Source: Paraphysomonas bandaiensis (taxonomy: Eukaryota; Protista; Chrysophyceae). Taken from it: a DNA stretch of 8,395 nucleotides. Location of the stretch: assembly GCA_965644295.1 (NCBI GenBank), contig CBFFRP010000480.1, forward strand, positions 1 to 8,395. The letters are read 5' to 3'. A model generated the notes under the pieces. That model saw nothing but the letters and a program-made list of their open reading frames with translations, was not told where the DNA came from and searched no databases. Positions 1 to 8,395 of the stretch are shown piece by piece (the first letter of the stretch is position 1; the number at the start of each line of letters is the position of its first letter). The position numbers and the translations under genes are program-made.

Positions 1-39
1 AGAATCTGTTGCAACAACTGATCAACGGCATCCAACTGT

Positions 40-60
40 AAAAGAGGAAAGCAAGGGTAG
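40..60 (+). other. Polypurine tract before long LTR (also at 3007-3027)
   Basis: AAAAGAGGAAAGCAAGGGTAG directly abuts TGTAAC. Confidence 0.7.
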
Positions 61-1615
61 TGTAACGCTGTGGCGTTCAACTATTATTCCATCGTACTCT
101 CTACTCTCTAGCGGGCATATAATGGACTACGGATGTCGAGAATGAGTGTGACTCACACCAGCGGTGATATGTTGTATTTTATGCATACTATGTTACATCT
201 ATGCTTGTTTGTACACTACACTATGTGATTGCACTGCTTATTATTATCATGGCATTTGTATTGAAGTAGTGTTATGCATGTATCACCTATACCATACACT
301 CACACCTCATACACATTACATTCACAATACATCACACCACACCACACATATATGACATATATTATACACCTTATCCATTATTGCATACATACTACACTTC
401 ACACTTATAACTCTGTATGCTGTATTGGTATTGATTCTTCTCTAGCTGCAGATAGGAGGAATTAGATATCAATATAGTGCATTCACATTCATCCATACCT
501 TCTTCTATCTCTATATGTATGTGTATTACCATCTATATCCATCATCACACTCTTGACACCTTGCATACTGTATGGCATATAGTACATGTGCTTGTATAAG
601 ATCCAAGTCTTGTCATAAGCACGATCTGCATGTATACATGACATGAATATGACGTATGTATGGTATATGTACACATTGTATCACCTGAGGGTCCATTCAT
701 CTTGTCATGAGGCCATTGGTACTCTCTGTGTGGTCTTCATATTCCTGTGGAGCGCAGTGGACTCTAACTTCTCGTGTTCATGATGTTTGGAGCCGTGACT
801 TGCGTCAGACGTCTGTCATTATGGACTTGACTAGGGTGCCAAGTGTCATCGTCTATCTCTTACTGGTTATGGAGCGTTGGCATGTATCTACAATGAGCGT
901 TAAGAGCATCATCCTCTTCAGTCTCTTCTCAACTGTTGTTTTTATCGTATGCTGTATTTACTGTATTTGCTGTATACTCCTGGATGCTACTCTGGTATGC
1001 GGGATGTATATGACCTTGTACTCCTCTGTATATACGATTGTATAATGCTGTATATGATTCTGAGTATACAGTATTGTGCTGTTGTATATTTGTATATGGT
1101 CTATAGTACAGTGACGGTATATTGTTGAGTACAAGCATATGATTGGACAATATTCTCATTTTGGTGTGCTGGAGACTCTGTTGGTTGGAGTTGGTCTTCA
1201 TAGCATTCTACGGGAGTGTTCCAGAAAACTGATATGTCCACATAATCAACCAAATCTTGTACAATCTTTTGTAGAATATTGTTCTAGATGTTATTGTGTG
1301 CTTCTAGATAGCTTGTAGAACATGAGTGGTTCTTTGTGAGTTATTTTGTGTTCTGCTTGCTGTTCAGATTTATGTTATAGTGCCTTACACCTTAACACGT
1401 AGTTAGAGGTGTCTAATTATAAGAGCTTGGGGGTGCCTGAGCTGTTGTAAGGCTTAATAACAAACATATTCTTCTTCTTCTCTTTATTGCTTCTTTCTTA
1501 CATTTCCTTATTATTCATATATAGTGGCTGCACCCGGTGTGATACCCCGGGTTTGGTTAAAGTAATTATCTTGTGTTTGCGTGGGGCTCCGTCAAGACCT
1601 TCGATGAGACCTACA
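61..1615 (+). mobile_element. Putative long LTR (LTR-A, about 1555 bp) of an LTR retrotransposon
   Basis: Starts TGTA after a PPT and ends CCTACA followed by TGG. It has a TATA-like TATAAG at 1418 and a pyrimidine-rich, U5-like 3' part. The 3' end is inferred from this single copy. Confidence 0.62.
1219..1423 (+). promoter_or_regulatory. Putative LTR promoter: degenerate heat-shock-element-like boxes plus TATA (copy at 4186-4390)
   Basis: TTCCAGAA 1219, TTGTAGAA 1269 and 1313, TTCTAGAT 1282 and 1302, TATAAG 1418. Confidence 0.4.
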
Positions 1616-1631
1616 TGGTGCTGGTGGATGC
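1616..1631 (+). other. PBS-like sequence after LTR-A
   Basis: TACA|TGGTGCTGGTGG. TGG is complementary to a tRNA CCA end. The cognate tRNA was not verified. Confidence 0.45.
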
Positions 1632-1674
1632 AGACATCGCCAAGAGGTATCCCCGCATTGTTGAATAGCATAAC

Positions 1675-1695
1675 AGAGAGAGGGGGAGGGGGCAG
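1675..1695 (+). other. Polypurine tract before LTR-B
   Basis: AGAGAGAGGGGGAGGGGGCAG abuts TGTAACG. Confidence 0.78.
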
Positions 1696-2002
1696 TGTAA
1701 CGCCGAGGCGTCAAACTAATCACATACCACAAGACCAGTGAGGTTAATAAGCTACAAGGGGAGCTCTAGTGGACTATGTGTGTATGTACAGCCTGCATCT
1801 TATCTTCGGATGAAGACACACTTCACTCTCGGATTACAAGTGCTGCTGTTTTTGCTATATGAGCAATGGAGAGATCTGATTGGTGTACTCGGGTTAGCTA
1901 TAGTAAATTTACTAGCGAAAAGCAGCTTTGAAATCTGCAGATTTTGATAACATTATTGGAAGGATATATCTACGTCAAGTTAAGACAATAGTCCCCGTTA
2001 CA
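1696..2002 (+). mobile_element. Putative short LTR (LTR-B, 307 bp)
   Basis: Perfect 7-bp inverted termini TGTAACG...CGTTACA, a PPT upstream and TGG downstream. The first 25 nt match the LTR-A start at 20/25. Confidence 0.7.
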
Positions 2003-2622
2003 TGGAACTGGCCAGCATATCTACGTTCTCTAAGAATGTGGAGGAGATTTTTGATAGACTGGAACGAAGACTGGATCAACGTCTTCAGAGGATCTCTCAG
2101 AGAACTCAAGACATGATCAGTCTACTTGTCTTAGTCTCCAAGATATGTGGGGAGATAAGGAAATCTGAACAGATGCAAGAGAACTCATCAGCTATGCCTG
2201 TTTCTTATCCAGAGGTCACTACCACCGCAATGGCCGAACAGATCCAAGAAGAGTTTTGTTCACCTCAGCAGGAGCTTTGTATGGAACCTAAGGCATCTAT
2301 GGTTCAGGAGGATGGCAATGCAGCCTCGCGGGTGTCAATTCCAGGGACAGAGACAACCACTTCTAATGCTAAACGGCTTCCTATCCACGTCCGAGTTCAA
2401 GGGGTACAGCAGCTCCGGTCCTCTCAACGTGAGATGATTTGTTCCAGTTCCGGGAGGTCCAGCTCGGTCTCAACTGAGAAGGCTTTAGGCCCTGACTCTA
2501 TACATGGAGTAGTGGGTAATTTCATGAACACTCCAGGATTTATCCAGCCTTTTACTTGGGTGATGACAATTTTTGAGGAACATGGTCCGGGACCGCCTTA
2601 TCTGGTCACAATCCAATGTTAA
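2002..2622 (+). CDS. Hypothetical 206-aa ORF in the retroelement internal region (gag position), predicted N-terminal coiled coil
   Basis: Longest ORF in this block. It begins at the LTR-B/PBS junction and has a heptad-like stretch VEEIFDRLERRLDQRLQRISQ. No gag zinc knuckle or pol motif was seen. Confidence 0.35.
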   Translation: MELASISTFSKNVEEIFDRLERRLDQRLQRISQRTQDMISLLVLVSKICGEIRKSEQMQENSSAMPVSYPEVTTTAMAEQIQEEFCSPQQELCMEPKASMVQEDGNAASRVSIPGTETTTSNAKRLPIHVRVQGVQQLRSSQREMICSSSGRSSSVSTEKALGPDSIHGVVGNFMNTPGFIQPFTWVMTIFEEHGPGPPYLVTIQC

Positions 2623-2938
2623 TTCAGGATTTCGGCTTATACAGGGCTTCTGAATGCATTTCGGCAGACATGTCCTGTTCATGCACATGTGTATCGGGTT
2701 CTCACGCATATTCTCCGGAAGATCTTGATCACGTATATTGCTCAGCCTATATCCGAAGTGAATGGTTCAGTTTTATGGAAAATAGTTCAGTAATTCAAGC
2801 ATTAATATGATGAGGAGAGCAGAAGAATTTCATCTAGAGTATTGTTCAGTCAGAAGATTTTCAGGATTTGCTATTCAGTGATTTTCAGTTGGGGGCAACA
2901 CGAGATAATGACTGATTTCATAGCATGGTTGACATGGT

Positions 2939-2963
2939 GAGAAGGAGAGAGAAAAGAGGGCAA
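2939..2963 (+). other. Polypurine tract
   Basis: GAGAAGGAGAGAGAAAAGAGGGCAA abuts TGTAC. Confidence 0.65.
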
Positions 2964-2976
2964 TGTACAGCGGCGC

Positions 2977-4528
2977 TGCAACAACTGATCAACGGCATCC
3001 AACTGTAAAAGAGGAAAGCAAGGGTAGTGTAACGCTGTGGCGTTCAACTATTATTCCATCGTACTCTCTACTCTCTAGCGGGCATATAATGGACTACGGA
3101 TGTCGAGAATGAGTGTGACTCACACCAGCGGTGATATGTTGTATTTTATGCATACTATGTTACATCTATGCTTGTTTGTACACTACACTATGTGATTGCA
3201 CTGCTTATTATTATCATGGCATTTGTATTGAAGTAGTGCTATGCATGTATCACCTATACCATACACTCACACCTCGTACACATTACATTCACAATACATC
3301 ACACCACACCACACATATATGACATACATTATACACCTTATCCATTACTGCATACATACTACACTTCACACTTATAACTCTGTATGCTGTGTTGGTATTA
3401 ATTCTTCTCTAGCTGCAGATAGAGGGAATTAGATATCAATATAGTGCATTCACATTCATCAATACCTTCATCTATCTCTATATGTATGTGTATTACCATC
3501 TATATCCATCATCACACTCTTGACACCTTGCATACTGTATGGCATATAGTACATGTGCTTGTATAAGATCCAAGTCTTGTCATAAGCACGATCTGCATGT
3601 ATACATGACATGAATATGACGTATGTATGGTATATGTACACATTGTATCACCTGAGGGTCCATTCATCTTGTCATGAGGCCATTGGTACTCTCTGTGTGG
3701 TCTTCATATTCCTGTGGAGCGCAGTGGACTCTAACTTCTCGTGTTCATGATGTTTGGAGCCGTGACTTGCGTCAGACGTCTGTCATTATGGACTTGACTA
3801 GGGTGCCAAGTGTCATCGTCTATCTCTTACTGGTTATGGAGCGTTGGCATGTATCTACAATGAGCGTTAAGAGCATCATCCTCTTCAGTCTCTTCTCAAC
3901 TGTTGTTTTTATCGTATGCTGTATTTACTGTATTTGCTGTATACTCCTGGATGCTACTCTGGTATGCGGGATGTATATGACCTTGTACTCCTCTGTATAT
4001 ACGATTGTATAATGCTGTATATGATTCTGAGTATACAGTATTGTGCTGTTGTATATTTGTATATGGTCTATAGTACAGTGACGGTATATTGTTGAGTACA
4101 AGCATATGATTGGACAATATTCTCATTTTGGTGTGCTGGAGACTCTGTTGGTTGGAGTTGGTCTTCATAGCATTCTACGGGAGTGTTCCAGAAAACTGAT
4201 ATGTCCACATAATCAACCAAATCTTGTACAATCTTTTGTAGAATATTGTTCTAGATGTTATTGTGTGCTTCTAGATAGCTTGTAGAACATGAGTGGTTCT
4301 TTGTGAGTTATTTTGTGTTCTGCTTGCTGTTCAGATTTATGTTATAGTGCCTTACACCTTAACACGTAGTTAGAGGTGTCTAATTATAAGAGCTTGGGGG
4401 TGCCTGAGCTGTTGTAAGGCTTAATAACAAACATATTCTTCTTCTTCTCTTTATTGCTTCTTTCTTACATTTCCTTATTATTCATATATAGTGGCTGCAC
4501 CCGGTGTGATACCCCGGGTTTGGTTAAA
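2977..4528 (+). repeat. 1552-bp direct repeat, copy 2
   Basis: Matches 10-1561. Identity stops abruptly after GGTTAAA (4528). Confidence 0.97.
3028..4528 (+). mobile_element. Second LTR-A copy, 3'-truncated by about 54 bp
   Basis: Near-identical to 61-1561, then replaced by unrelated sequence. The missing tail (GTAATTATC...CCTACA) does not reappear in the window. Confidence 0.65.
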
Positions 4529-4529
4529 C

Positions 4530-4713
4530 TGTGGCGGCAGTTCTGTTCAGCCTGGTTCGAAACCCTATGCCGCCACATAGAAAGCGTTTTTCTGAAAAAA
4601 AATGGAATTCAAATACTGTTAATGCTAGGCTTGGACCACATTAACACGCTATGAGGATTCCAAACCATTTTTGGGGGAATTCCTTTACAACAATGGTTTG
4701 GAACTCTCATAGC
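4530..4713. other. Cluster of consecutive inverted repeats (stem-loops)
   Basis: TGTGGCGGCA 4530-39 / TGCCGCCACA 4568-77; AGAAA/TTTCT 4579-93; TGTTAATG 4617-24 / CATTAACA 4639-46; 22-bp stem 4648-69 / 4692-4713 with 20/22 Watson-Crick pairs. Confidence 0.9.
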
Positions 4714-4848
4714 AGCCATTTTGCTATAAAACAAAACGACAAAATCCCAATTTTTATATAAAAACCTTGATTTATGCAAAAACCCTATAAAACCTTGAAG
4801 TCTAATTTAATTATAGAATATAATAATGTTGTTATATTATATATATAG

Positions 4849-6129
4849 ATGTCAATTTATACAAAGCCAAAAACAAGCAATAACGCTATTTTTAATGCAG
4901 AAAATCATAAACAGATTGAAACAGCAAGAGTAATATTAAATATGGCGGAATATGCAAGATTAGACAATGCTAAATTTACAGCGAACGTTGAAATCTTGAA
5001 TGGTAATAACTTAACCATAAACAATGAACCCCAAACAGTTGCTTTCACAGATTCAAAAAATAATATGTTGTCAGATATGAATACAAGATTATTAAACCTC
5101 ACTGAAAATGAAATACAAACATTAGACGGTATAAATACCAATGAAACTATACAATCACAATTAAATACATTAACAGCAAGTTTTAACGGTCTTGATGCTC
5201 TTCAAGATATAGACTTAATTAATATACCTAATTTACAAGCGGATGTTGCAAATTTAGAAGCCCAAGATATAACATTACAGAACAATATTAATACTAAACA
5301 GAATTTAATCGACGTGAATAATAAGTTGGATTCTTCTTTAGTTTATAACTATACATTTAATGAAACGGTTGATAATATAATTTCTAACCTGAATGCTCAA
5401 ATAGCAAGTAATGATACAGATATAACAAGCTTACAAACTCAGATTACTAATAATGACACTGATATAACAAGCTTACAAACTCAGATTACTAATAATGATA
5501 CAGATATAACAAGCTTACAAACTCAGATTACTAATAATGACACAGATATAACAAACTTACAAAGTGAAAAACATAATTTAATAGATGTAAATAATAAACT
5601 TGATTCTTCTTTAGTTTATGACTATTCATTTAATGAAACAATTGAAAACTTACTAAGTATAATAGACGGCAATATTACAACACTTGAAAATACAAAATTG
5701 AATTTAACAGGCGGAACAATGACAGGAAATATAACAACTAAACAAATAAGCGAATCAATCAGCACAACATATACGTTTTCTTCAAATGTGTTGACATATA
5801 ATTATAATAATGGTTCAATTATATATTTTAATGGTTTAACAAGTGATACAAATTTTGAACTTGATATAACGAATATTAATTCAAGTAACTTAACAAATAC
5901 AAGTTTTACAGTTTCTGTTTTAATAGACACATCAACATATAAGGCATATATAAACACTTTAAAAGTTAATACAGTTTCAGAAACGTTGAATGTGTCAGGA
6001 GGACTCGCAAATATTAATGTAGACGATGTGACAACATCAGGAGCAATATTGCAAACAATAACAATAATATATACTAACTCAGGAACATCACCAACGAAAG
6101 TAATATCAAATATAGGTTCATATTATTAA
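4849..6129 (+). CDS. Viral fibre/spike-like protein, 426 aa (coiled-coil shaft, beta-rich C-terminal head)
   Basis: Long intact ORF. It carries the fibre-type motifs EIQTLDGINTNETIQSQLN and KLNLTGGTMTGNI, 14-aa heptad repeats NDTDITSLQTQITN, and a duplicated K(Q/H)NLIDVNNKLDSSLVY module. Confidence 0.8.
   Translation: MSIYTKPKTSNNAIFNAENHKQIETARVILNMAEYARLDNAKFTANVEILNGNNLTINNEPQTVAFTDSKNNMLSDMNTRLLNLTENEIQTLDGINTNETIQSQLNTLTASFNGLDALQDIDLINIPNLQADVANLEAQDITLQNNINTKQNLIDVNNKLDSSLVYNYTFNETVDNIISNLNAQIASNDTDITSLQTQITNNDTDITSLQTQITNNDTDITSLQTQITNNDTDITNLQSEKHNLIDVNNKLDSSLVYDYSFNETIENLLSIIDGNITTLENTKLNLTGGTMTGNITTKQISESISTTYTFSSNVLTYNYNNGSIIYFNGLTSDTNFELDITNINSSNLTNTSFTVSVLIDTSTYKAYINTLKVNTVSETLNVSGGLANINVDDVTTSGAILQTITIIYTNSGTSPTKVISNIGSYY
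5410..5562 (+). repeat. In-frame 42-bp tandem repeat, about 3.6 copies
   Basis: Units start at 5410, 5452, 5494 and 5536 and encode NDTDITSLQTQITN. Confidence 0.95.
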
Positions 6130-6315
6130 AAATATTTATTCTATTCAAAATATTTTTTCAAAATAATTTATCAAAAATATTTATTCTATTCAAAATATTT
6201 TTTCAAAATAATTTATCAAAAATATTTATTCTATTCAAAATATTTTTTCAAAATAATTTATCAAAAATATTTATTCTATTCAAAATATTTTTTCAAAATA
6301 ATTTATCAAAAATAT
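6128..6315. repeat. Perfect 45-bp tandem repeat x4 plus a partial unit
   Basis: AAAAATATTTATTCTATTCAAAATATTTTTTCAAAATAATTTATC at 6128, 6173, 6218 and 6263. Confidence 0.97.
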
Positions 6316-6357
6316 ATAAAACAATTTAAAAAATATTATATATATATATTATATATC
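6315..6357 (+). promoter_or_regulatory. Putative viral promoter: 19-bp box plus TATATA leader
   Basis: TATAAAACAATTTAAAAAA at 6315-6333 is identical to 6980-6998. Both lie just upstream of an ATG. Confidence 0.6.
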
Positions 6358-6525
6358 ATGCCTAGAGAAATTAAAAGAAAGTGCAAACATTGTGATAAAA
6401 CTATAAAAAGAATAAACAATGATTGGAATTCAAGAGAATATCATAAGAAATGTTATAAAGAGATTGAAGAGATGAAGTCAATGATTATTAATATGGAGAA
6501 ATATAAGAAGATGTATAATCTATAA
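6358..6525 (+). CDS. Small putative zinc-binding protein, 55 aa (CxxC...HxxC); not in the ORF track
   Basis: MPREIKRKCKHCDKTIKRINNDWNSREYHKKCYKEIEEMKSMIINMEKYKKMYNL*, preceded by the shared promoter box. Confidence 0.75.
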   Translation: MPREIKRKCKHCDKTIKRINNDWNSREYHKKCYKEIEEMKSMIINMEKYKKMYNL

Positions 6526-6588
6526 ATTTTGTTGTCATTATAGTTAGTTAGTATTATATATACATTTGTATATGTAACGTTTCAAAAA

Positions 6589-6912
6589 TTAATAGCCTTG
6601 TTCAGGTTTAATATAAGTGCCATGTTGGTCATCATATTCTTTTAATAGCTTTTGTCTTTTCTCATAAGCTTTAGTTTTTTCAAGTTGTTCACTTGGTAAG
6701 TTTCTATTAATAGGATTCTTATAATATATTTGTTGTCTTTCACTGAGAAGTTCAACTTGTTTTTTTCGTTTCTGTATTTCTAAGTCTTTGATTAAGGCTT
6801 TATATCCTTCAATTTGTTTTACTATGTTTGATATTTCAGTTTGAACTTGAGGTTTCTTTGTCTTTGGTATTGCGAAGAGTTCATTTTTTAAACATATAAC
6901 AAAATCTGCCAT
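6589..6912 (-). CDS. Hypothetical basic coiled-coil protein, 107 aa
   Basis: Intact ORF in stop-rich AT DNA, K/E/Q-rich helical composition, TATATA just upstream of the ATG. Confidence 0.75.
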   Translation of the reverse strand: MADFVICLKNELFAIPKTKKPQVQTEISNIVKQIEGYKALIKDLEIQKRKKQVELLSERQQIYYKNPINRNLPSEQLEKTKAYEKRQKLLKEYDDQHGTYIKPEQGY

Positions 6913-6979
6913 AAAGTATATATAATAATGTTTATATAAAAAATATAGTTTTCAAATTTAATAAAAATAATAATTTTAT

Positions 6980-7026
6980 TATAAAACAATTTAAAAAACT
7001 AATTTTATATATATAATATATATATT
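6980..7026 (+). promoter_or_regulatory. Putative viral promoter: 19-bp box plus TATATA leader
   Basis: Second copy of TATAAAACAATTTAAAAAA, 28 nt before the ATG at 7027. Confidence 0.6.
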
Positions 7027-7422
7027 ATGAAAACTTTAACAATTGACATTGAAGAAATTGACAGTTTATATTCAAAGCTACAAAATGATAAAGAAATAAG
7101 ATGTATTGTATTTGAATGTGAGAGAATGAGAGAACTAAATTTAATTGATTTTGAAATTGGTTTATCATATGAAGAAGAAGAGGAAAAAGATATATTATAT
7201 GAAAAAAACAATAGAAAAATCAATAAAGTTATTTCAAGATTTATTCCCAACACTATAACACATCTAAGTTTTAATGATGAAATCCACCTTGATGAACGTG
7301 CATATAATTATTTACCTCAAAGTATACTTGAAATTCAGAATGAACATGGTGATACAATAACTAGAGATGAAATTAAAGAAATCATTAAAACTACAGAAGA
7401 ATCTTATGCAGGTTGTTTTTAA
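7027..7422 (+). CDS. Acidic hypothetical protein, 131 aa, with degenerate FNIP-like repeat(s)
   Basis: Intact ORF. FIPNTITHLSFND and YLPQSILEI resemble the IPxSVTHLxF core of FNIP repeats. Confidence 0.7.
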   Translation: MKTLTIDIEEIDSLYSKLQNDKEIRCIVFECERMRELNLIDFEIGLSYEEEEEKDILYEKNNRKINKVISRFIPNTITHLSFNDEIHLDERAYNYLPQSILEIQNEHGDTITRDEIKEIIKTTEESYAGCF

Positions 7423-7427
7423 ATATA

Positions 7428-7718
7428 TTAATTTCCAATAACTTTATCAGCGTTCAAATGTTTCAAAGCGTCTGTACTATGTGATTTAAAAGGGTTATTT
7501 GTTTTAGCATTAAATACTTTAGTTTTATTTTTTTTATTATTATTAAAATAATTTAATGATGATACAGGGTCATTACTTGTTTTAATGTCTGTTTGATTTG
7601 ATTGATTTTTTTTTAACATTTCAAAAGGTGATATTGCCTTATTAAATGTAATAACGTTTTTGGAATTCTTCCCTACTTCTTCTGTAGTTGAAGTGTAAAC
7701 TTCGCTTCCGTAGTTTTC
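7428..7718 (-). pseudogene. 5'-truncated viral-type CDS (C-terminal 96 aa)
   Basis: The listed 63-aa ORF stays open for 33 more codons upstream (ENYGSEVYTSTTEEVGKNSKNVITFNKAISPFE-M) to a stop at 7719-7721, where the composition changes. There is no TATATA leader at the internal ATG. Confidence 0.6.
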
Positions 7719-8019
7719 CTATCACATACGCACTACGTATTATGAATGAATGGATAGTATGTCACATGCATGCATATCCATTCATTGTCATCACACATTG
7801 ACATGTTTACATCAGTTGTCCTTAATATATAATATACCTTTTCTCCTCTAAAGTACTTCATACTTTAACTTGGTAGCAGATGGTTACGATAACCAACCTT
7901 ATTTATTTGTTTGTTCGCCTCCACATCACTGGTGGAATGACGGCATCAACATATGAAACAAGCCTGTCATCTGTACACAGACGAAATACACGATGTGCTT
8001 CCTTTGAACTCTGCTGTTT

Positions 8020-8140
8020 CTCGAAAACTCGAAAATCCGGGGGTTTTTGGAATCAATTTCCGGAAAATATGTACCTTTTTGTTCAAACTCGGAAAATCGT
8101 TTTTTTAAAGAGAATATTTCCGGAGAATATGCATTTTTTT
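8020..8140. repeat. Imperfect short duplications
   Basis: AACTC(G)GAAAATC occurs twice and TTTCCGGA(A/G)AATATG...TTTTT occurs twice, about 60 bp apart. Confidence 0.55.
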
Positions 8141-8395
8141 TGGGCACTGAAAACAAATCGACAGTCTGTCTGTTCCTTGTTTGTGTTCCTGCAGTGTGTA
8201 TTATATGACTTTAAGGAGATGACAGTGTATACACTAATGCACATGTCCATTCCAGCCAGTCTGATTTTGATGACTTGTCTCCACCATGTGTGCTGATTTT
8301 GACACCTTGAGACGCTTTGTCCGGTGATACACCAGGAGTGGTTAGACTTCATGTTGATGGCTGTGAATATTCTTTCGATGACTACTATTCGCCTT

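Follow-up and report, generated by a model that had tools for sequence, protein, structure and literature searches.

Tandem arrays of long terminal repeat (LTR) elements of the terminal-repeat retrotransposon in miniature (TRIM) and Cassandra types consist of members that are copies of one another, are often long, and carry small LTRs of approximately 100–250 bp. In grasses, complex LTR insertions flanked by a target-site duplication (TSD) and formed by template switching have been described for Angela, Squiq and Opie, with two co-packaged RNAs as their proposed origin (Sabot & Schulman, 2007, PMC1950507). Tf1 cDNA of Schizosaccharomyces pombe was found to insert independently of integrase at the primer-binding site (PBS) of resident Tf2 elements, which yields hybrids that are tandem or truncated (Li et al., 2022, PMC11042837), and Ngaro retrotransposons are reported inside endogenous mavirus-like virophages of Cafeteria (Hackl et al., 2021, PMC8547959). 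In this study we describe a block of LTR retrotransposon sequence at positions 10–4528 of an 8395-bp contig of Paraphysomonas bandaiensis (CBFFRP010000480.1, here C480), the whole of which is referred to below as the window. This block is a unique chimeric “complex” LTR insertion. It belongs to a known kind, represents no new type of element and comes from a lineage that has received little study.

A single insertion bounded by two copies of LTR-A

The window is composed solely of repeats and belongs to an assembly of 62.5 Mb in 669 contigs. Its positions 1–4600 were searched against the genome, giving 99 matches whose edges define three units (family A, family C and LTR-B), and approximately 40 genomic copies were used to place the ends of LTR-A and LTR-B. 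Within the block, a direct repeat of 1552 bp (10–1561 and 2977–4528, 99.3% identity) comprises the two outer LTR-A copies, each preceded by the same 51-bp piece of internal sequence; the position of each feature is listed in Table 1.

Three paralogous empty sites on contigs C534, C461 and C59 (L025–L027), which are 98% identical, read through the insertion point as AGAAT-CTGT-GGCGGCAG. The window has AGAAT-CTGT at 1–9 and CTGT-GGCGGCAG from 4529. Because the CTGT duplication matches all three empty sites, the block entered as a single unit with a 4-bp TSD, the same length as in families A and C. Two independent insertions lying side by side and joined by unequal crossing-over were considered as a source of the outer structure and are ruled out by the one matching TSD and the empty sites.

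All ten differences between the outer LTR-A copies fall within a 232-bp patch (272–503, equivalent to 3239–3470 in the downstream copy), and at six of these positions the variant also occurs in other family-A copies. This pattern suggests a recombination or gene-conversion tract, not age. Outside the 232-bp patch there are no differences at all, and the insertion is therefore very recent.

A preliminary description of positions 1–4528, made from the sequence alone, had proposed a concatenated chain of dissimilar LTRs, each with its own purine tract and PBS-like flank. Part of its outline holds. The motif GGGYAR-TGTA occurs at 55–64, 1690–1699, 2958–2967 and 3022–3031, giving four matches against 0.07 expected (none of 200 shuffles reached four), and all four sites come after purine-rich tracts and align with one another. 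The composite is indeed bounded by near-identical copies of LTR-A, and between them lies an LTR that differs from both and is flanked by a purine tract and, at its opposite edge, by a priming-site leader. The proposed LTR ends at CA dinucleotides (16, 1615, 2002 and 2983) proved mistaken, as genomic copies put the ends at 1561/4528 and 1902: the CA at 1615 lies inside the last 34 codons of family-C pol, that at 2002 supplies the A of the ATG of a 206-aa open reading frame (ORF), and those at 16 and 2983 belong to internal sequence conserved in all family-A copies. The LTRs accordingly measure 1501, 207 and 1501 bp (given before as 1555, 307 and 20 bp) and are separated by 134 and 1125 bp, in place of the spacers of 44, 80, 961 and 44 bp that had been read from the CA positions. 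What had been taken for a 20-bp LTR at 2964–2983 is a degenerate relic of an LTR start behind a second purine tract.

Family A, family C and the 341-bp patch

Family C is an autonomous element of 7.3 kb with 829-bp LTRs, a 524-aa gag-like ORF and a 1267-aa pol. In the pol of L023, RVT_1 (residues 311–439), RT_RNaseH (535–641) and Integrase_H2C2 (732–782) follow one another in the order reverse transcriptase, RNase H and integrase that defines Ty3/gypsy elements (Metaviridae). The family also has the two LTRs and short TSD of that group, as in the copy on C388 (LTRs at 276–1104 and 6791–7619, TSD GTCA). Positions 1563–1896 of the window match eight family-C loci at 93–100% identity: all 334 bases are identical to a copy on C372 (L005, 1927–2260), seven other copies are 93–97% identical, and the eight loci remain alike far upstream of the matched segment. 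All other genome matches to 1563–1896 sit in normal family-C context. Translation of the 1564–1668 region gives the C-terminus of the L023 pol, comprising its last 34 codons and stop.

Family A is a non-autonomous element derived from Ty3/gypsy and similar to large retrotransposon derivatives (LARDs), having LTRs and a TSD, an internal region in which no gag or pol domain was found, and cis signals common to its autonomous partner. Canonical copies are flanked by 4-bp TSDs (CCTT for L001 on C75 and ATAT for L002 on C169), and internal matches to the window cover 1888/1903–2669 and 2937–3027. The end of the family-A LTR varies, reading GGTTAAA in the window and GGTCACA or GCTATA in other copies, and in every case GTAAATTTACT comes next. 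Across families A and C the 5′ LTR terminus is always TG (TGTAACG), while the 3′ terminus is AA here and CA or TA in other copies. The 206-aa ORF has no Pfam match and no similarity to the family-C gag. It is open despite amino-acid identities of 65–93% among the eight full-coverage copies, and the pairwise ratio of nonsynonymous to synonymous substitution rates (dN/dS) is approximately 0.55–1.0.

The LTRs of the two families resemble each other over the first 29 bp (83%) and the last approximately 380 bp (72%), and the families have in common the purine-tract grammar and the GTAAATTTACT leader. As had been noted, neighbouring LTRs of the block differ. The shared LTR ends, purine tract and leader fit the expectation for a family A that would be mobilised by C-like proteins.

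At its left end the block carries the terminal 51 bp of family-A internal sequence, and similarity to that sequence ceases at window position 10. The left terminus, TGCAAC, agrees with the canonical TGTAAC at five of six positions. Family A has two polypurine tracts (PPT1 and PPT2), each followed by a TG-start sequence like the start of the LTR. The one behind PPT1, at 2964, aligns weakly with the true LTR start and can be interpreted as a decayed duplication of a purine tract together with the start of an LTR; the sequence was found in ten family-A copies, in nine of which it comes after PPT1 inside the internal region. In a family-A copy on C206 the sequence starts exactly at the TGTACAG of the relic, just behind PPT1 and next to unrelated DNA, and the relic thus appears to serve as an alternative left end. 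The insert in the window starts 13 nt further in.

The middle of the block is occupied by a 341-bp patch (1562–1902) placed precisely at the priming site that follows the upstream LTR-A, and all segments have the same orientation. At its left junction a complete LTR-A is followed by GTAA and then by family-C pol, with 3 nt shared. LTR-B combines the initial 201 bp of LTR-C (1696–1896), which is 829 bp in full, with the last 15 nt of a GCTATA-type family-A LTR (1888–1902), such that position 201 of LTR-C meets the family-A U5 ending via a 9-nt overlap, CTCGGGTTA (1888–1896). The 3-nt microhomology lies within the priming site and the 9-nt microhomology 7 nt upstream of it. Beyond LTR-B the natural order of LTR end, palindrome and family-A leader is found, with LTR-B joined to the full palindrome at 1902/1903. 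The GCTATA ending occurs in family-A copies only. A full family-C insertion at GTAA followed by two deletions was also considered, and is excluded by the absence of this ending from every family-C LTR. The block is no chain of complete cassettes: its first “internal region” is the end of family C, 133 bp long, and LTR-B is a deletion chimera.

Each junction pattern was searched across the whole assembly with up to three mismatches allowed, and the left and right chimeric junctions each occur once. Since both junctions are unique in the genome, the composite is not a propagating family, and the segment order whose recurrence at other loci the preliminary description had suggested testing is confined to this one.

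Table 1. Coordinates of the block at 10–4528 and its surroundings in the window (1–8395).
Feature	Position	Strand	Remarks
Left flank	1–9	+	Virus-like host element; 9/9 bases run seamlessly into 4533 onward in paralogs L025, L026 and L027
Left TSD copy, CTGT	6–9	+	Part of the left flank
Left extension, 51 bp	10–60	+	Terminal 51 bp of family-A internal sequence; identical to 2977–3027
PPT2, left-extension copy	40–60	+	Purine tract within the left extension
LTR-A, upstream copy, 1501 bp	61–1561	+	Starts TGTAACG, ends GGTTAAA; genomic copies start at 61 and finish at 1553–1565 (equivalent to 3028 and 4520–4528)
GTAA, first 4 nt of the priming-site palindrome	1562–1565	+	Placed by the canonical junction of LTR and GTAAATTTACT and by comparison with family-C internal sequence
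Left chimeric junction	within 1562–1565	+	TAA (1563–1565) common to family C
End of family-C internal region, last 133 bp	1563–1695	+	pol codons 1564–1665, stop TAG 1666–1668, purine tract 1669–1695
LTR-B, 207 bp	1696–1902	+	LTR-C start fused to GCTATA-type family-A LTR end
Family-A internal region	1903–3027	+	Collinear with family-A copies L001–L004 and L013
Priming-site palindrome, GTAAATTTACT	1903–1913	+	Within the family-A internal region
ORF, 206 aa	2002–2622	+	Open in all eight full-coverage family-A copies
PPT1	2939–2963	+	PPT1 and relic conserved in 10 family-A copies
Degenerate LTR-start relic	2964–3006	+	Follows PPT1
PPT2	3007–3027	+	Directly before the downstream LTR-A
LTR-A, downstream copy, 1501 bp, complete	3028–4528	+	Differs from the upstream copy at 10 positions
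Right TSD copy, CTGT	4529–4532	+	Empty sites read AGAAT-CTGT-GGCGGCAG in L025, L026 and L027
AT-rich virus-like element, insertion target	4529–7685	.	131 genome matches, 71–100% identity

The palindromic priming site and the virus-like target

A perfect palindrome of 12 nt, AGTAAATTTACT, straddles the LTR (U5) end of families A and C, as it does in at least three additional LTR families, and occurs 74 times in the genome against six occurrences of a reversed control. In the window it lies at 1902–1913 and, in part, at 1561–1572 (GTAA, 1562–1565), and further sites include L015 (1031 and 5461), L036 (558 and 4907) and L044 (2149). The TGG candidates that had been put forward as primer-binding sites were wrong; in both families the LTR end is followed by GTAAATTTACT, with no TGG of the kind expected for priming by a tRNA 3′ end. 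We located 63 host tRNA genes in the genome, and ARAGORN identified no tRNA gene in the window. Neither LTR-A nor LTR-C contains a complement of 9 nt or more to the leader, as would be expected for self-priming of the Tf1 type, and a literature search on palindromic priming sites found nothing relevant.

Like those of the patch, unusual junctions at three further loci are concentrated at this palindrome. On C225 (L014, 3235–3310) LTR-A is followed by GTAAAT and then by an inverted LTR-A that lacks its last 15 nt, in the manner of a snap-back; on C24 (L016, 3240) the palindrome is followed by 11 nt of inverted LTR end and a jump into the ORF; and on C238 (L018, 3310) the palindrome is partly duplicated. 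Two further loci carry an LTR between a purine tract and more family-C sequence. C507 (L024, 2880–3788) has the last 78 bp of family-C internal sequence including the purine tract, then LTR-C and a full family-C element, a tandem for which no TSD was seen, while C206 (L008, 1201–2388) has the last 333 bp of family-C internal sequence including the purine tract, then LTR-C and family-C internal sequence. These arrangements are either “extended left ends” or truncated tandems.

A tentative and rather unlikely extension of these observations is that the Ty3/gypsy-like families of this genome lack a tRNA primer, and that AGTAAATTTACT pairs two co-packaged RNAs for priming or strand transfer. If this were true, the site would be a built-in hotspot for intermolecular jumps, accounting for heterologous multi-LTR chimeras, snap-back inverted LTRs and partial duplications of the palindrome alike.

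The AT-rich target of the insertion, which is multi-copy in the genome, may be virophage- or polinton-like. Its paralogs extend to the left of the insertion site and encode an rve integrase and an HNH-NUMOD4-AP2 endonuclease (L026, 5056–6069; L031, 1184–1687); the integrase has a C-terminal chromodomain and lies approximately 0.7 kb left of the site. The window copy encodes a 426-aa coiled-coil repeat protein and an ORF with a weak FNIP-repeat match that falls under the Pfam cut-off, and contains a 45-bp tandem repeat at 6123–6310. Adjoining the insertion site on the right, at 4531–4580, is a tRNA-like minihelix with a GGCGGCA/TGCCGCC stem around a T-loop-like motif, GGTTCGAA; it is conserved in the paralogs, and ARAGORN calls no tRNA there. 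Around 38 related loci there was no sign of tRNA-gene targeting, the single tRNA seen being about 570 bp from one element.

From 7686 to 8395 the virus-like element is interrupted by a second repeat family with many 100%-identical copies. A 185-bp piece of it recurs approximately 2.5 kb downstream at C429, C63, C137 and C218, which suggests a small terminal-repeat retroelement. The same repeat also adjoins virus-like sequence at C63, C141, C254 and C580.

Origin of the composite and comparison with known systems

Taken together, the block probably results from one very recent integration event, in which integrase placed a family-A element into an endogenous virus-like element; both the extended left end and the patch would have come from aberrant reverse transcription. 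We attribute the patch to reverse transcriptase because its segments belong to one retroelement clade, share one orientation and are joined at the priming site and the U5 end. The same reading is favoured by the aberrant junctions at the same palindrome in L014, L016 and L018, by the LTRs flanked by purine tract and leader at C507 and C206, and by the left end behind PPT1 at C206. The left end, 51 bp upstream of the LTR, would represent a cDNA end made from the region upstream and trimmed or recognised at TGCAAC. For the patch, a family-A RNA of the GCTATA type would have been the first template, with synthesis beginning at its priming site and covering approximately 15 nt of U5. Using the 9-nt match, reverse transcriptase would then have switched illegitimately to U3 of a family-C RNA packaged alongside, and proceeded across the family-C purine tract into pol. 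From there two routes may be envisaged, each with a documented precedent (PMC1950507 for the first and PMC11042837 for the second). The patch could have formed within the same complex cDNA, by a second jump at the 3-nt match, and been integrated whole; or a family-A element already in place, with an identical priming site, could have received the aberrant cDNA there by homology and independently of integrase, the distal side of the cDNA being truncated. The data do not separate the two, and we slightly prefer the homology route because it needs only two co-packaged RNAs and accounts for the ending of LTR-B being different from the one common to both outer LTRs.

Several points weigh against this account. 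The ten differences between the outer LTRs demand an extra step of recombination or gene conversion, and the priming-site motif does not match the ...CCA end of a tRNA. Formation in one cDNA requires three RNA donors (two types of family A and one of family C), while the homology route predicts no particular left junction. The inner junctions moreover rest on a single 8.4-kb contig made wholly of repeats, and four public runs, which assemble as short contigs that break at repeats, neither bridge nor contradict them. Loose ends at 1563, 1565 and 1896 in the runs of two other organisms were in canonical family-C contexts only.

The same evidence bears on several other explanations. Microhomology-mediated repair also typically leaves junctions with matches like the 3 and 9 nt seen here, and the patchy LTR differences show recombination at this locus or its ancestors. 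Together with the complete identity of the patch to the genomic copy on C372, these features could point to an origin at the DNA level, in which break repair or replication template switching (guided by microhomology and with templated filler DNA), or else deletion and ectopic recombination involving A and C copies in the genome, pasted the 341-bp patch into a family-A element that was already resident. We regard this as unlikely, as the three donors are of one clade and lie in the same orientation and in the order expected from minus-strand synthesis, the junctions fall exactly at the priming site and U5 end as they do at three other loci, and an insertion of family C with two deletions cannot yield the GCTATA ending. 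Identity of the patch to another locus, the repetitive nature of the whole contig and the lack of any listed bridging record in public runs would likewise be expected if the inner junctions were absent from the organism and had been created by a chimera of assembly or library. That is improbable: a graph or overlap misjoin would need overlaps far longer than 3 and 9 nt and would have had to respect the grammar of the element (a complete LTR end with GTAA, and an LTR end joined to the palindrome), and the TSD and empty sites confirm the outer boundaries.

The patch is flanked on both sides by GTAA (1562–1565 and 1903–1906), and 4 bp is the TSD length of these families, so that a one-LTR cDNA (1566–1902) might have been inserted by integrase into the leader. 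Any two junctions of LTR end and leader precede GTAA, so the repeat is expected without integration; such an event would also have had to hit leader position +4 exactly, and the piece begins on the left with TTATC, which lacks TG and bears no likeness to the att site, unlike the extended left ends TGCAAC, TGTACA and TGCTGG. We consider nested insertion very improbable. The preliminary description had named copy boundaries away from its TG/CA ends, or the TSDs of ordinary nested insertions, as observations that would speak against it; the boundaries do miss the CA ends, but no nested-insertion TSDs explain the inner pieces. Its own proposal, taken in its stronger form, was a non-autonomous composite family with several LTRs that propagates itself, or else an array assembled as LTR cassettes were captured end to end time after time. 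That proposal agrees with a TSD-flanked block bounded by LTR-A and with the presence of three loci having an LTR between purine tract and leader, yet is now barely tenable. Each chimeric junction is found only once in the genome even when mismatches are tolerated, the remaining matches to 1563–1896 are ordinary family-C sequence, and the intact priming site after LTR-B means that replication would give a 3′ LTR with an extension, and none is present at 4528. Template switching, which the preliminary description had also invoked, stands as the most likely source of the inner junctions, though not of a chain of complete cassettes.

With its base-precise junctions, validated empty site and datable, very recent formation, the locus is a clean natural record of sequence exchange between families A and C. 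It also illustrates that a first-pass grammar of TG/CA ends and purine tracts can mislead when genomic copies are not consulted. The palindromic priming site and the piling of retroelements into a virus-like element could matter more than the composite itself, and together they bear on priming and on the control of endogenous virus-like elements in protists.

Like the complex insertions of grasses (PMC1950507), the block has three LTRs, a TSD of the usual length, near-identical outer LTRs and a different or hybrid central LTR. Where those have an internal LTR and two complete cores, the LTR here is truncated to 207 bp and the first core is reduced to a 133-bp pol tail with purine tract. The block differs further in that its central LTR is a deletion chimera of an autonomous and a non-autonomous family, in that switching took place on 3-nt and 9-nt microhomologies and not on the R region, and in its host, a chrysophyte-like protist. 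With the Tf1/Tf2 hybrids (PMC11042837) it shares an incoming LTR placed directly upstream of the identical priming site of the resident (1902/1903), a far side truncated at a short homology (1562–1565), and the mixing of two related families with a single LTR between them. Unlike in those hybrids, the incoming piece is itself an A/C chimera and the priming site is a palindrome, not a Tf1-type self-primer. The yeast type of insertion is further characterised by reliance on Rad52 (single-strand annealing) and by needing no integrase, and the likeness of the block to it is one of sequence structure. TRIM and Cassandra arrays are similar in that LTRs stand between an upstream purine tract and a downstream priming site and are shared by neighbouring internal regions, but the LTRs of the window come from two families, the middle one being foreign to the outer pair, are far larger, and form a single structure. 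The Ngaro elements of Cafeteria (PMC8547959) are comparable in that a heterotrophic stramenopile flagellate likewise harbours retrotransposons within endogenous virus-like elements present in multiple copies. They differ in being of the tyrosine-recombinase type, whereas the elements of the window are integrase-type relatives of Ty3/gypsy with 4-bp TSDs. The formation of complex and tandem LTR elements, known from grasses and yeasts, is thereby extended to a stramenopile protist.

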